From: Blepharisma stoltei ATCC 30299
Taxonomy: Eukaryota; Protista; Ciliophora
Assembly: GCA_965603825.1 (NCBI GenBank)
Contig: CBFDEM010000046.1
Span: 62,001-126,000, forward strand
Length of the DNA stretch: 64,000 bases
Direction: 5' to 3'
Below are positions 13,844-37,508 of the stretch, in pieces. The notes under the pieces were generated by a model. That model was not told where the DNA came from and searched no databases. It saw nothing but the letters and a program-made list of their open reading frames with translations. Each line of letters opens with the position of its first letter. Positions within the stretch are counted from its first letter, which is position 1. The translations under genes and the position numbers were made by a program.

Positions 13844-14334
13844 AATAACTTTGTGAAATAATGATAAATAAATATAGATTATATAAAGCAGTAATTATAT
13901 GCAAGATATTTGCAAATTATACAAATAATATAAAAAATTGCCTGGATTAGCGCATTGCTATAGGAAAATATTTTACCAGAGGATTTTTGAATCTTTCCCC
14001 ATCTTTACTTGCGACTAAAAATAGTTGATAAAAATATGGAAGACGCCTAGAAATCTTTCAGGTGCTCTCCATCTCTCAAATCGTTTAATTCATCCATTTA
14101 ATTCCTTACTTATTCCTTATACCTTCCAGGAAACATGTATATCCTTGCCTATCCCTTGAAATTCCCAGAAACTGGCTCTTAGTCATTGCTTAGTCTAAAT
14201 TACCTATGAGAATTGGATAGTCGAGATCCTGGCTGTTCCAAATAAAAAAGCGCGAAAAATACTCTTTATGCCCACAGTGAGTCTGTCTAAGCCAAAATTA
14301 AAAACCATGGCCAGATAGCTAATTCTAAAAATTA

Positions 14335-14814
14335 ATGGGCAATAAAGCATCTCAACTTGACTCAAACCAGATTGAGATCATTTTATCCCCAGATGAACTG
14401 CGGAGGTCGACGAACGCATTTTACGTTTTTGACCAAGCTGGCCTTGGAGAAATTGAGATTGGCCAAATTGCAAGAATGATGCAGGGACTAGGCCACACCT
14501 TTTCATACACAGAAATTAGGGCTATGATAGAAAAAGCGAAAATAAAGCGAACTTTTACATTAAATCAGTGGCTGCAAATGCAAGCACGAAGAAAAATTGA
14601 GATGCAATTCAAAGAGAAAGTGGTTGACGCCTACAAGGACTTTGAAAGATGCGGATCAAGCAAGATGAGCCTTACTGATGTCAGAGAAACTGTGGCATCG
14701 CTAGAAGGTGACCTTTCGCCAGCTAGGGCTGAGGAGATTTTGAGAGAATCAGTAAAAGATGAGCCAGTCAGTCCAAGGTTCAATGAGTTCATTAAGGTTG
14801 TCGTTGGCAAATAA
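14335..14814 (+). CDS. N-myristoylated divergent calmodulin-like EF-hand protein (paralog 1)
   Basis: MGNKAS; AFYVFDQAGLGEI; calmodulin-length with degenerate loops. Confidence 0.75.
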   Translation: MGNKASQLDSNQIEIILSPDELRRSTNAFYVFDQAGLGEIEIGQIARMMQGLGHTFSYTEIRAMIEKAKIKRTFTLNQWLQMQARRKIEMQFKEKVVDAYKDFERCGSSKMSLTDVRETVASLEGDLSPARAEEILRESVKDEPVSPRFNEFIKVVVGK

Positions 14815-15312: not shown

Positions 15313-15795
15313 ATGGGAAACAAGATTTCTAAATCAAACCAGAGCCAAAATGCAAGCATATTGACTCCAGAACAAATTCAAGAATACACTGAAGCCTTCT
15401 ATATCTTCGACCAAGCTGGAGATGGCGAAATCGAAGTTGCAAGCATATGGCCCATGATGAGTGCATTAGGTCAGTGCATTCCGAATACTGACCTACGCAG
15501 ACTTATGGCCTATGCGAAGGTAAAAAACACCTTTTCCTTAAAACAATTTTTAAAAATCCAAGAAATGCGACTAGTTGAACAAAAAATCAAGGAAAAATTG
15601 GTAGAAGCCTTTAAATGCTACGAAGTAGGAGGAAACTTCGAAGAAACCTTCGACAATATAAAAAACACCCTGGAAGAGGCACAAATTGACTTATCAATGG
15701 GGAAGTTTGAAGAACTGGCACGGGAAACTCTAGAAGGAGAAGGCGATTACCGATATGAAGAATTCCTAAAAATGGTCACAAATAAAGTTGGGTAA
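15313..15795 (+). CDS. N-myristoylated divergent calmodulin-like EF-hand protein (paralog 2)
   Basis: MGNKIS; LTPEQIQEYTEAFYIFDQAGDGEI; YEEFLKM; clear similarity to 14335-14814. Confidence 0.78.
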   Translation: MGNKISKSNQSQNASILTPEQIQEYTEAFYIFDQAGDGEIEVASIWPMMSALGQCIPNTDLRRLMAYAKVKNTFSLKQFLKIQEMRLVEQKIKEKLVEAFKCYEVGGNFEETFDNIKNTLEEAQIDLSMGKFEELARETLEGEGDYRYEEFLKMVTNKVG

Positions 15796-32323: not shown

Positions 32324-33394
32324 TTATGGTTCGTAAGTTCTATCGTGTCCTCCATACCAGCCATGAAGAGCTTCGTCCATCGTCAAATCAACCTTGGCTT
32401 GATAGTCTTGCAAGATTCTCATCAAATTCTGAGGGAATGACACAGGTTTTACCTTCAAGTCTTCAATTTTCAATGCGTCTTTTGATACCACGATGTCCAT
32501 TTGGCTTTCTTCTACATCATTTAAGCTCATATGTCTTGAAAACCCAAACGTATGAGGCATGTATTGGATAAATTTATGGGCTTTTCTATAAGGAATTGAT
32601 CTTACATTTGGTGGCTTTCCAATCTTATTGTAGACGATTTCCATGATTTCTCTGTTAGAATACACATTCGGGCCACCAAGCTCATAAGTTTTTCCTATGG
32701 TTTCAGGCATTCTTAGACAGTTTATTACGCATTGTCCTATGTCCTTATAGTAAATTGGCTGTCTGAGTTCTTTCGCGTCATCAATAACCGGTAGATAATC
32801 GATCATCTGCTGAATCAGTCCCATTCTAGTCACGTAGTTATCATATTCTCCAAAAATTGTAGTGGGTCTTAGAATCGTCACATTAGGGTATGCTGCTTTG
32901 ACTTCTTGTTCCCCATGCCATTTAGTTTGAAGACGTGGCGAAGTGCTTGCTGGGTCAATGCCGACTGCTGAAAAGTGAATGAGCCTCAAAATGTCTGGAT
33001 TCCTTGCACAGGCTTCTGCTATTCTTCTTGGAACTGTGACATTTGACTCATAAAGAGTATCGTAGTCTCTTATATAGTGATAGCCTCCAATTGTATTGAT
33101 AACTACATTAGCGTTTTCTAGGACTTGGTCGAGGATATCTGGGTCCTTTAAATCTAGCTGCTGTCTGAAAGAAATAAACTTGAAGTTTCCAATTCTTAAA
33201 TAGTCAACCCATTTTGAAGATGTTCTGCATGGGATTAAGACTTGAGCATGGATATTGGTTAAAAGTCCTATTGCGGCTCGAGCAATTTGTGAGCTGGAGC
33301 CAAAAACGACAGCTTTGATCATGGAAGTTGAGGAGCGATCATTGACGTGGAGAATTGAGGATTTGATAGTCCTTCTCATAGCTGCTGATATCAT
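32324..33394 (-). CDS. NDUFA9: Complex I 39-kDa subunit (NDUFA9, SDR fold)
   Basis: Mitochondrial presequence; RSS...AVVFG, VVINTIG, RLIHFSA, K..GEQEVK..YPNVTILRP..IFG..D, QPIY..D, GKTYELGGP. Confidence 0.9.
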   Translation of the reverse strand: MISAAMRRTIKSSILHVNDRSSTSMIKAVVFGSSSQIARAAIGLLTNIHAQVLIPCRTSSKWVDYLRIGNFKFISFRQQLDLKDPDILDQVLENANVVINTIGGYHYIRDYDTLYESNVTVPRRIAEACARNPDILRLIHFSAVGIDPASTSPRLQTKWHGEQEVKAAYPNVTILRPTTIFGEYDNYVTRMGLIQQMIDYLPVIDDAKELRQPIYYKDIGQCVINCLRMPETIGKTYELGGPNVYSNREIMEIVYNKIGKPPNVRSIPYRKAHKFIQYMPHTFGFSRHMSLNDVEESQMDIVVSKDALKIEDLKVKPVSFPQNLMRILQDYQAKVDLTMDEALHGWYGGHDRTYEP

Positions 33395-33709
33395 TTTATA
33401 TGAGAATTATAATAAGTTTATGATGATTATTAAATTTGTGGAGAATATAAGGATTTTAGATCTGGGTGAAAAGGAGTTGAAAATAAAGCAATTGAAATAA
33501 GGAAATTAATGATCTAATAAGATAAGTTGATGATAGCAGGTCTCAATATTTTTGAAAAAATTACTATTGATTTAGACTATTTAATTCACTTATTGTAAAA
33601 TAAAGAAACTATTTTAAAAGCTCTTTTGAATTTCTAAATTTTCATACAATTAGATTGGCTTATACTTTGCATTTATAGTCTCTACTTTCAACTGCTGTTT
33701 TACAAAATA

Positions 33710-34221
33710 GCCCTATATGCTACCCCACGAAGTAGCAGATGGCTTCTACCTTTGGATGATCTGGGGACGAAGTTCTAGATTTCTTGGTAGAGATTTCCTT
33801 AAGATTAACCCATTCATATTTTGCTGGAACCTCTTTCCAACCCAAGCCATCAGCCATGCTAAGCCAACCCTGAAAAATCCTGTCTTATTGCTCTTTCTAT
33901 CAGTCCTCTTAAGCTGGAGAGACTTGAATCCTAAAGAGCTACCTTTTCTTTATGCCCTCCAAACGAAAAACTTAACTGATTTATGTCATTTATGACAGGC
34001 TCTCATTAGTCTGAAAGTTAAGTTGCCCTGATTCTATTAGAAAACTATATCTGGGCTGCTAATAAAAAATATGCTAAAGCAGCCTATCAAGTCATGCTAC
34101 TCACTGATGCTGTGCTGAGATTCTCATGAAGCTTGCCAGCCTTAGTCAGCTCTTTGCCTTAAAACATTACGTTCAGACACACTTTAGGGCACTAGCCGCT
34201 GAGAGCGCAGGCCACCGTCTA
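33710..34221 (-). ncRNA. Candidate structured non-coding RNA, family not identified
   Basis: ~42% GC by my count against very AT-rich flanks; several complementary helices; G-U pairs favour the minus strand; no convincing protein. Confidence 0.4.
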
Positions 34222-34265
34222 TTTTATGTATTAATTTTCATATACTTAATATTTCATAAATAATC

Positions 34266-37200
34266 ATGACAGACCGTTTACCAGGCAAGTACCTTGAAAG
34301 ACTTCACACAAAGCCTTGATTTCACAGCGGTCATGTCCCTGAAATTAAATACTCCTACAGTGTTTCAGGCCTCACACCGTCTCACTATCCTATTAAACCA
34401 AGATCAAGGCCTCCAGGTGCTTCAGCTGAAAAAGACCCAAGAACTCCTAAAAAAGTTTTTCCAAACGCTGATGACCCAAAACCTCCTATCAATTTTCGTG
34501 AGTTTCGTGAATACTCTTTTCTTAGAGAAAATGAAGTAATTGTAACTATCGAGCATTGTGACAACTGTGAATCACACTTAGAGACAACAAGGCATGACCC
34601 TGCGAAATATTCAAGTTTTGCACAATCTATCAAAGCAGGAGTCTTATCGAGATTCCCAATGGTAAAAGTCCTTATAAAGCCAATCTCAAAATGTGATGAA
34701 AATACAACAAATCAAAGAATGGGAGCTTTTGAGGTGCAAATCTGCAGTAAAATAAAAGGGATTATTAAAAAAGATTCACTTCACTCAAAACTTGCGACTA
34801 GAAAGTGGCCTGATATCAGAGAAGTCATAGGGAAAATGGCAAGTTACTTGCCAACTTGTCAGTTATTTGTGACTATTTATGATTACAGTGACCAAGAAAA
34901 ATTCTTAAAAGGAATCAAAGTAATCGTCAGACCTAAAGCACTCCCGATAGCAATCCCATCAAGATCAAGGCCAAAAAGCGCCAACTTTTCCACCATTCGG
35001 CCTCAATCAGCAGGGGGTGCATCTGTCAGATTTTCCTCAAGAAAAAATTCTCGGCCTACCTCTCACATCAGTTCTAAGCCCAAACCTTCTGAATCTATAT
35101 CCTACGAAAGAACTACAGACCGTGACGGTTCCTGCTTATTTGCCAATATTCCTCTGGACATCTACGAAATTGAGGTGGTCGAAACCAAAGAATTCAAAGG
35201 CGCCACCAAGCTTTTCAATACTTTTGAAGAGCCTTTACAAAATTCTAGCCTAAATGTATATATAGCTGTCCAGTCAAGAGAAATTTCTTCTATAAAAATC
35301 GTGCTAAAAGACCCAGAACTGAGGACAGAAATTGCAGGGGCAATGGTCAGGATTTCTAGAGGGACTGGAGAAATGTACTTTGTGCCAGAAATGAATAGAG
35401 GGGTATATGAGCTATCAATTCCTAAAGGAAATTATGATTTAAGCATCCAAGCAGAAGGGTATCAAGAAATCGTCAAAAGTTTGCAGGCAAATCAGGCTGA
35501 AATTGTGCTGACAGAGCTTATGAGATCGAGAGAAAGCAGAGAAGTCCAGGTCATGACTTATGATGGGCTAAGTGGGGAGCCTTTAGGGTCAGTTTATTTA
35601 GAGCTAAAAATTAATCAAAATAGCTCACCTTTGGAAGGCTTGGCCAAGCAAGGGACTTATACGTATATTCTAGATGAAGTAGGGATATTTACGATATTAG
35701 CTTCAAAACAGGGATATATGGATGCTACAGTCACTCTGAAGGTGGCCACAAAAGGAAATACTATAATTGCAATAGGATTAATCCCAATGCCAAGACCAGA
35801 GCTTTCTTATATAGTATTTTCATGGACTCGCTGCAGCGACGATTTAGAAATTGAGGCTATAGGAGACAATATACTTTTATCTTTGCGGTCACCTAATGGA
35901 AAAGGCTGCCAATTTATTGATATGCTAAAATCTCATGGAATCGCGACTATTTGTCTGACCCCAGAATGTGATAATTTAAGAATTGTCGCCAAATTGCTAT
36001 CAAAAGAGTTGCTAGAAGGAAAAGATAATGATAAGTCGCCATTATTAAGTTCTGGGTTTAGCGTGAATTATTATACAAAGCAGAGACAAGAGTCTAATAT
36101 AATACCAAGCCATGGCAGAGGAGGCTGGTGGGATATTGGAGTTTATATGAAAGAAAAAAGTGATTTTATAGAAACCAATGTAATTTCTGATGAAAAACTT
36201 ACACATTGGGGAGACTTTTTTTCTGCATTTTATGAAATCATAAACTTAGCTCAGAGCTCTGATTCGATACCTGCAGTTTTTGGATTTGACCAAAGTGGAG
36301 TCACAAAGCAGACGGAATATGGAAGAGATAAATTTGTGTCACCTGAAATTGTTAGGAAAATTTTGGCATCAGTGTGCAATGAAGACGAGCTTCAATATGC
36401 AATGAAAAGTTTAATCACACCTAATGGAGTCAGTTTGGCACAGATTAAAAAAAGATATGAAAAAAATAGAAAATTCCAGCTGCAAAAACTGTCAAGATTT
36501 CAATCAATTGATACGTATGCCAGATTTCTAGGGATGGATCCAATTGAAGATAAAGAGTACTATTGGATTGCAGAAGAAGCTTTGCATTCAAATTTGCCTG
36601 AAGGATGGGAAGTTTTAGTTGATAATAAAGGATCAATTAAATATAGACATAGCCCATCTGGACAGATAACCTCAGACCATCCAAATCCTAAGGACGAATT
36701 TTATAGAAATAAATTTTTGGAAGAAAAACAAAAAGCTTCTAAAGAAATAGAAATTAGCAGCAAAGAAATATCAAAAGCTTCAGAAGAAAGGCCAAGTTCT
36801 ATTGAAAGGTCCAGATCTGAAGAAAGAAAATCAAGCCATGAAGAAAAACACTCAAGCAGCAGTGGTGAAGAAGGAGAAGGAAATGTCCAAGAATTCATGG
36901 AGGTTGTTAACAAGCAGTGTAAAGAATTAACTGAGCTCGTAGAAGAAAAAATGAATCAAGCTGTTCAGGCAGGAATTGACATCGATATTGAGACTAAAGG
37001 AGCTTTATTAGAAAAAATTGTAGAATATGCAGAAAATTTAGAAAAATTAAAATCAGAAATTGATGATAAAGAAGCCTTGGATTTTGTGAATAATTGGATT
37101 TTGGCATTTGGAAAAATGCATAGAAGTTTGATGGAGTTTCATGTAGAAGTAAGAGCTGTGGAAGAAAGCAAGGAAGAAGTAAAGAAAGACAAAAAAGACA

Positions 37201-37508
37201 AAAAGGATAAAAAGGATAAAAAAGACAAGAAAGACAAAAAAGATAAAAAAGATAAGAAGGACAAAAACGATAAAAAAGATAAAAAAGACAAAATAGACAA
37301 AAAAGATAAAAAAGAAAAGAAAGAGAAAAAGAAAGAAAAAAAGAAAGATAAGAAGAAGCATAGCAGAAGTTCTAGTAGCTCTAGTAGCTCTAGCAGCTCT
37401 AGTAGTTCAAGTAGCTCAAGCAGCTCTAAATCTAATTCTCCTAAAGAAGAATCTCGATATGAAAATGAGCAGTTTGATGAAAGCTACAATGAAGAGAGAT
37501 CTGTTTAG
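34266..37508 (+). CDS. Multidomain protein: Rdx (SelW/SelT/SelH-like CxxC) + PEGA/carboxypeptidase-regulatory-like repeats + CEP164-type WW + KKD/poly-Ser tail, 1080 aa
   Basis: ATG 34266 in frame with ORF 34659 (one TGA); VTIEHCDNC..RH..KY...RMGAFEV...LHSKL...WPD; GNYDLSIQAEGY; YARFLGMDP..D....WIAEEAL...LPEGW...HP. Confidence 0.75.
37184..37427 (+). repeat. Coding repeats: (KKD)n 9-nt tandem repeat followed by poly-Ser
   Basis: AAAAAAGAY/AAGAARGAY units, then AGC/TCT/AGT run. Confidence 0.8.

Follow-up and report, generated by a model that had tools for sequence, protein, structure and literature searches.

The literature on eukaryotes holds two established members of the RNase P RNA family, RNase P RNA and RNase MRP RNA, together with close uncharacterised duplicates (PMC3001073 for the duplicates). 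RNase MRP RNA is the precedent for remodelling of such a gene, being an RNase P duplicate in which the P4 core was kept and the specificity domain was changed (PMC10966300). In eukaryotes, Pop1, Pop6 and Pop7 form a ring around P3, and two catalytic magnesium ions are placed by CR-I and CR-V around a conserved P4 uridine (PMC10966300). In human, mouse and zebrafish, the RNase P RNA gene has given rise to extra genomic copies; those of human and mouse are 76% to nearly identical to their parent (PMC3001073). In Drosophila, an RNase P-type fold is carried in a polymerase II transcript without a polymerase III promoter of its own, and this intronic RNA is the sole RNase P RNA, complete and active (PMC4287351). 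Among ciliate non-coding RNAs, the heterotrich telomerase RNA contains a pseudoknot (PMC8287931).

The locus to be compared with these systems is a transcribed, GC-rich intergenic island of Blepharisma stoltei, whose 5' domain has an RNase P-like core. Unlike the human and mouse duplicates, the island is unalignable outside the core; pairing is kept, and the core lies inside a longer transcript. The likely polymerase II transcript recalls the Drosophila RNA, although B. stoltei has a complete, USE-driven RNase P RNA gene elsewhere. RNase MRP RNA has P3, CR-I and a P4 of the type GUCCCC/GGGGC, whereas the P4 of the island is of RNase P type; a GUCCCC...GGGG pair is present in the island (33768, ~33726), but its halves are only ~35 nt apart and without P1 and P2, unlike MRP. 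In contrast to heterotrich telomerase RNA (PMC8287931), the island is much longer and has neither a CCCUAACA template nor an upstream element. An incomplete literature search yielded no paper on this RNA or on a P3-less derivative keeping only the P4 knot.

The B. stoltei genome comprises 64 contigs (41.46 Mb) with telomeres of CCCTAACA. UGA codes for tryptophan in this organism (10.1101/2021.12.14.471607), and all frames were therefore translated with that code. In the window, i.e., the whole stretch of 64 kb that was analysed, the surroundings of the island are as follows:

32324-33394, minus strand: NDUFA9-like gene, neighbour in tandem, downstream of the island transcript.
34222-34265: AT-rich spacer of 44 nt with 11% GC, a probable bidirectional promoter common to the Rdx gene, without snRNA-type upstream element.
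34266-37508, plus strand: gene for an Rdx and carboxypeptidase-regulatory-like/PEGA protein, head-to-head with the island.

A sequence-only reading of the window had proposed a structured RNA at 33710-34221, head-to-head and about 45 nt before the ATG at 34266; the measured distance is 44 nt. The protein of the NDUFA9 neighbour is found in assembly GCA_914767885.1. Within the Rdx gene a second allele was observed at 34685-34775 (three of the four runs described below carry it, with 5 differences in 151 nt and roughly a third of the depth), which is probably that of a second mating strain; no sequence variants of the island were seen in the four probable RNA runs. Another assembly has an insert of 377 nt (L049, ~2415-2791) at window position 33602/33603, 20-55 nt past the 3' end of the island transcript. 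Its inverted ends are C-rich and G-rich, and in appearance it recalls the BogoMITEs, a class of eliminated sequences (PMC9942856). Farther away, two related small EF-hand-like ORFs stand in tandem on the plus strand (14329-14814 and 15313-15795). Both start with MGN, as do N-myristoylated proteins.

The GC content of 33710-34221 was 0.426, which agrees with the earlier manual count of ~42%. It is far above that of the left spacer (0.229) and the right spacer (0.114), as had been claimed; all non-coding DNA of the window has 0.261. It is also higher than in local coding sequences, although the margin is small (NDUFA9 0.398, Rdx gene 0.364). The edges are sharp, with ~43% GC where neutral DNA has ~25%, and the most GC-rich non-coding 150-nt stretch of the 64 kb falls within the island. 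In the 41.46-Mb genome the island is single copy; searches for paralogues with BLAST and a covariance model gave no match but itself. It is not interrupted by germline-limited DNA, no flanking terminal repeats were found, and the NCBI annotation has no gene there. A repeated UAGCAU (4 copies, p 0.12) was not significant, and a 10-nt identity to U6 near 33861 is at chance level.

One ungapped contig was obtained from each of four runs, all of a single study and marked as probable RNA. The contigs (560-597 nt) reach from 33624-33658 to 34217-34223, i.e., beyond the left edge of 33710 assumed at first, and correspond to one transcript:

33624-34223, probably minus strand: non-coding unspliced transcript of ~560-600 nt, with a tight end at 34217-34223 and a ragged end at 33624-33658.

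The contigs, which contain no gaps, are distinct from those of NDUFA9 and the Rdx gene, with a depth of zero at 33452-33572. They show neither the strand nor the true ends of the transcript; the minus strand is inferred from the tight end at ~34220 and the ragged end at ~33640, from the head-to-head spacing of 44 nt, and from the direction in which the RNase P-like core reads. Comparable head-to-head spacings of 33-38 nt occur in the related heterotrich and in the duplicate block described below. The sequence-only reading had named the lack of a transcript as an argument against its candidate; on the contrary, discrete contigs were found in all four probable RNA runs and support the transcription of a new non-coding RNA. 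A structured leader, also considered there, is unlikely, since the contigs join neither of the flanking mRNAs, and an RNA of the proposed strand would run away from the Rdx gene. The island is an undescribed, real non-coding transcript. A GTCCCWTAA-like element, which lies upstream of U6, U2, U3 and RNase P in this genome, is absent before the island on both strands; this suggests transcription by ordinary polymerase II. At the MRP gene, no clear copy of the upstream element of RNase P was found.

Two open reading frames had to be considered:

33717-34040, plus strand: ORF of 107 codons (UGA as tryptophan), judged spurious.
33720-33857, minus strand: ORF of 45 codons, with weak coding signal, no homologue and several upstream AUGs.

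The earlier impression that the island holds no credible protein is borne out, as no frame has a coding signal beyond that of shuffles (p 0.35) and no homologues were found. The codon score of the 107-codon ORF falls under the 1st percentile for real CDS pieces, such an ORF arises in 4.7% of shuffles (chance 0.047), and the 92 aa that precede its first UGA have no relatives in the genome, Pfam, or two large protein collections. The 45-codon ORF (33857-33723) scores in the low range of real CDS and is preceded by seven AUGs; searches for homologues gave none, and it is unlikely to be coding.

The RNase P-like core and its surroundings consist of the following parts, in the order of the minus strand:

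33994-34219, minus strand: 5' domain of 226 nt with an RNase P-like P1/P2/P4 core, without P3.
34200-34219, minus strand: 5' strand of P1, GCUCUCA (34206-34200) with the extension GACGG (34219-34215), starting at the contig ends 34217-34223.
34186-34191, minus strand: 5' strand of P2, UGCCCU, with a pair probability of ~1.0 with 34029-34024.
34172-34178, minus strand: P4-like 5' strand, GUCUGAA (GUCUGAG in the genome's own RNase P), preceded by GUGU.
34054-34084, minus strand: hairpin GGCUGCU/AGCAGCC of 7 bp, pair probability 0.99.
34024-34029, minus strand: 3' strand of P2, AGGGCA.
34007-34024, minus strand: CR-V-like segment with the 3' strand of P4, 16 letters as in the genome's own RNase P plus a 2-nt insert.
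33994-34005, minus strand: 3' strand of P1, UGAGAGC (34005-33999) and CUGUC (33998-33994).
33650-33993, minus strand: 3' extension, 41% GC down to 33710, predicted to contain several helices and without a known family; folding z +0.8.

Along the minus strand, P1 (34219-34215 and 34206-34200), P2 (34191-34186) and P4 (34178-34172) are thus followed by an interior of ~140 nt, and then by P2 (34029-34024), CR-V with P4 (34024-34007) and P1 (34005-33994). The complementary segments on which the sequence-only reading had based its topology (34200-34206/33999-34005, 34186-34193/34021-34029 and 34172-34178/34009-34015) are all in place, and P2 and P4 cross inside P1, as it had described. This order, P1-P2-P4(5')...P2-CR-V/P4(3')-P1, is that of the B. 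stoltei RNase P RNA, and the domain is of similar length (226 versus 234 nt). The P4 strands, GUCUGA/UCAGAC, are of RNase P type, with a predicted pairing of 34178-34172 with 34015-34009 and a duplex energy of -7.6 kcal/mol, which is equal in the island and in the genome's RNase P; a U matching the conserved P4 uridine is present. The CR-V (AC..AA..UCAGACUA) directly precedes the 3' strand of P1 and is identical to that of the RNase P RNA except for the 2-nt insert; with a short gap allowed, its 16-letter pattern occurs in 41 Mb only at the island and at RNase P. Part of this segment is also pairable as an extension of the P4 helix, which could partly explain the CR-V-like letters. The letters of P1 and P2 are unlike those of RNase P, as would be expected if pairing and not sequence was kept.

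Compared with RNase P RNA (RF00009), the island lacks P3, the CR-I purines, the upstream element and an Rfam score, and it carries a 3' extension of ~350 nt. The absence of P3 and of the CR-I motif had been recognised correctly: just 7 nt separate P2 and P4, and GUGU stands before P4, where the purine run GGAAG is expected. The idea that P3 had shifted into the 3' extension (CAUAAAG 33954, GCUUAAGA 33914) was rejected, as no closing stem was visible by eye. Weak look-alikes of CR-II, CR-III and CR-IV were noted by eye in the interior and are unconvincing; the interior is unrelated to RNase P, its alignment with RNase P and MRP being no better than that of shuffles.

The likeness was evaluated with a strict descriptor, consisting of both P4 strands, CR-V, a 7-bp P1 and a 6-bp P2. 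The island and the true RNase P pass it, as do 10 of 7.16 million shuffles (1.4e-6 per 512 nt), a frequency to be read with thresholds that were chosen post hoc, when the locus had already been seen. Genome-wide (41 Mb), 2 of 59 anchor loci pass, namely the island and the true RNase P only; ~0.1 chance hits are expected per genome, and a far smaller number within a non-coding island that is transcribed. With helices relaxed to 6/5 bp, four loci pass, and 11 if G-U pairs are allowed. Taken by themselves, P4 anchors are no more frequent than chance (16 versus 18 in the control); among 15 such chance-level loci the island has the best P1+P2 score, 34 versus 31 for RNase P. The 5' strand of P1 begins where the contigs end, at 34217-34223, a feature which the descriptor did not use. 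The P1-P2-P4 topology of RNase P/MRP type, pointed out by the sequence-only reading, is the one feature of the island that stands above chance.

Comparisons of the domain as a whole gave less. Its similarity to RNase P is marginal (p 0.006-0.07), and coding windows score higher. With a model built from the domain, RNase P ranked second of 38 weak matches (E 0.45), in a different register; this second register, the 5' part against the 3' half of RNase P, was not significant. In the pseudoknot-free ensemble P2 is kept, and other partners are found for P1 and for both P4 strands; P1 itself has a pair probability of only 0.02. Competing pairs are 34181-34174/34053-34046 and 34017-34012/34005-34000. 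The RNase P-like fold with P4 open lies 12.8 kcal/mol above the minimum; for the real RNase P this value is 9.9.

Strong overall structure is unsupported by folding energy. The z-scores against shuffled sequence, proposed as a check by the sequence-only reading, were -1.39 (plus strand) and +0.53 (minus strand) for the whole region, and are not significant. Among 70 sliding-window z-scores on both strands, one reached -2.6, on the plus strand, and no minus-strand window went beyond -1.6; for scale, the genome's RNase P has -2.0, MRP -3.2, and the 5' domain of the island -0.6. The description as helix-rich does not hold either, with 12 perfect helices of at least 7 bp versus 8.4 +/- 2.9 in shuffles. 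The hairpins at 34054-34084, 33984-33997 and 33719-33736 are present, as is the duplicated ACUUCGU followed by CCCC (33773) or GGGG (33733). The segments of the suggested 5'-3' helix GGUGGC/GCCAUC also exist, but a better competitor for the pairing was found in GAUGGCUU at 33851-33844. Between 33773 and 33718 on the minus strand, the GGGG in the loop region of the 33719-33736 hairpin is pairable with the CCCC of the other ACUUCGU copy, and could form a small second pseudoknot, at a level not above chance.

Canonical family members are found elsewhere in the genome: RNase P RNA at G000:C18:415074-415307 (L001 1501-1734; 234 nt, 83 bits with RF00009) and RNase MRP RNA at G000:C31:54778-54979 (L002 1501-1702; 202 nt, 106 bits). 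Both RNAs are compact and have a P3 with a common loop motif. In the genome paper only tRNA, rRNA, SRP and spliceosomal RNAs were masked (10.1101/2021.12.14.471607), and therefore the RNase P and MRP genes may be unannotated. U3 is encoded by two genes and SRP by one, also elsewhere; the suggestion that the island is a highly divergent known RNA thus fails for the genome's sole RNase P, MRP, U3 or SRP. With regard to proteins, one Pop1, one Rpp29 and one Pop5 gene and one weak Rpp14-like match were found, hence no dedicated second protein set. A search for PRORP (PF16953) in the whole genome, carried out without positive control, gave no match.

An Rfam scan of the island, which the sequence-only reading had recommended (E<=10, with 2 kb and 250 nt), gave nothing meaningful. 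The RF00009 covariance model, which scores 83 bits on the true copy, had no match at E<=10, and membership in nuclear RNase P RNA was rejected on model score, P3, CR-I and promoter. RNase MRP RNA (RF00030) was likewise rejected, as the island has no corresponding model score, no GAAAGUCCCC/GGGGCUU P4 and no P3. Telomerase RNA was rejected because the upstream element and the CCCUAACA template are lacking; the latter is absent throughout the 64-kb window, as had been noticed before. An SRP or snRNA signature had not been seen and was not found: there is no match to U3 or SRP models and no snRNA-type upstream element. A snoRNA cluster was rejected in view of missing canonical boxes and rRNA guides; no Rfam snoRNA exceeded the cut-off in the island, no UGAUGA box and no H/ACA guide of at least 11 bp occur there, and the longest antisense match to the rDNA loci is 10-11 nt. 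ARAGORN gave no prediction for the island.

Some insight into the history of the site came from a related, Blepharisma-like heterotrich with UGA as tryptophan (L037; SRR24908292), which has the same gene order with a gene for a 172-aa protein between NDUFA9 and the Rdx gene, and from a duplicate block in B. stoltei (L046; G000:C19:64244-67759), with a decayed NDUFA9, an intact 172-aa gene and an Rdx paralogue. The members of this uncharacterised protein family, which has no Pfam match above cut-off and two copies in B. stoltei, are:

L037 3018-3536, minus strand: 172-aa protein gene of the related heterotrich.
G000 C19:65744-66259: copy in the duplicate block of B. stoltei.
C41:251073-251582: second copy in B. 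stoltei.

The Rdx paralogues of B. stoltei share 79% identity, and 69-71% with that of L037; therefore, the duplication should have followed the split from the L037 species, with reciprocal losses, which suggests that the C19 block is a segmental or genome duplication after that split. Since the slot holds the 172-aa gene in L037 and in C19, and the island has no similarity to it at the DNA or protein level, the island arose in the slot or moved there after the duplication; an origin from the 172-aa gene by decay or inversion was rejected for the same lack of similarity. At NDUFA9- and Rdx-anchored loci of other heterotrichs nothing similar was found, more distant loci not being syntenic, and an exact-pattern scan of metagenomes for the island was empty.

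Overall, RNase P ancestry of the island RNA appears probable in the sense of an even balance. The reading preferred here, tentatively and somewhat short of that balance, is a non-catalytic RNase P-derived domain within a lineage-restricted lncRNA, which may serve as a partial protein-binding site or as a protective 5' fold. An orphan, species-restricted polymerase II lncRNA, which came from the bidirectional Rdx promoter after loss of the 172-aa gene and resembles RNase P by chance, is a possible but more doubtful explanation. It agrees with folding and helix counts at chance level, with the island as a young occupant of its slot, with an interior lacking similarity to RNase P, and with the chance frequency of P4 anchors taken alone. 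It requires, however, a coincidence of ~1e-6 per island, and in addition a 7-letter identity with the CR-V of RNase P and a P1 that starts at the transcript end, and it leaves ~43% GC with sharp edges unaccounted for.

The other explanations are considered unlikely. It is improbable that the transcript comes from the remnant of a mobile element or from a protein gene in decay: the GC content does resemble that of coding DNA and the length is close to that of the 172-aa gene lost from the slot, but similarity to that gene, a frame signal and terminal repeats are all missing, and the island is single copy in the 41.46-Mb genome. Equally little weight can be given to a catalytically active third RNA of the RNase P/MRP family, P3-less, with a 350-nt extension, its own particle and a new, possibly organellar substrate; we rank it just behind the remnant. 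The core evidence, including the equivalent of the conserved P4 uridine, applies to it equally, and the PRORP gene that went undetected (without positive control) would leave room for an organellar or other RNase P-like role; yet the eukaryotic P3 is the platform for Pop1, Pop6 and Pop7 (PMC10966300) and is absent here, as are the CR-I purines and convincing CR-II, CR-III and CR-IV, there is just one Pop1 and one Rpp29 gene, and the RNA is missing from the syntenic slot of the relative. Very unlikely is an mRNA for a small protein of 45 aa (minus strand, 33857-33723) or 107 aa (plus strand, 33717-34037). The contigs are mRNA-like and the 45-aa frame falls in the low range of real CDS, but against it stand seven upstream AUGs and no homologues, for the longer frame a non-coding codon usage and its occurrence in 4.7% of shuffles, and also atypically long GC-rich UTRs and the lack of a gene in the NCBI annotation.

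In the preferred reading, the first 226 nt of the B. stoltei lncRNA of ~570-600 nt would descend from an RNase P RNA gene. The minus-strand RNA would be made by polymerase II from the 44-nt bidirectional promoter common to the Rdx gene, as inferred from the missing upstream element, which U2, U3, U6 and RNase P have. The 5' end of the RNA should pair into P1 and the P4 knot should form. Without P3, loading of the Pop6/Pop7(Rpp25/20)-Pop1 module would not be expected, and without the CR-I purines the two-metal active site is probably not built; with both absent, there should be no normal holoenzyme and no cleavage of tRNA precursors, and the island RNA is presumably not a tRNA-processing enzyme. 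Its most likely role may be to offer core RNase P/MRP proteins, e.g., Pop5-Rpp30, part of their binding site or to act as their decoy; alternatively, it could provide a compact protective 5' domain for the longer RNA.

If the likeness is by chance, the island would be an orphan lncRNA of modest interest. If covariation confirms the core, this locus would be a natural case in which the duplicate of a ribozyme gene has turned into a long non-coding RNA, and it would allow one to test directly which RNase P proteins can bind when P3 is missing.
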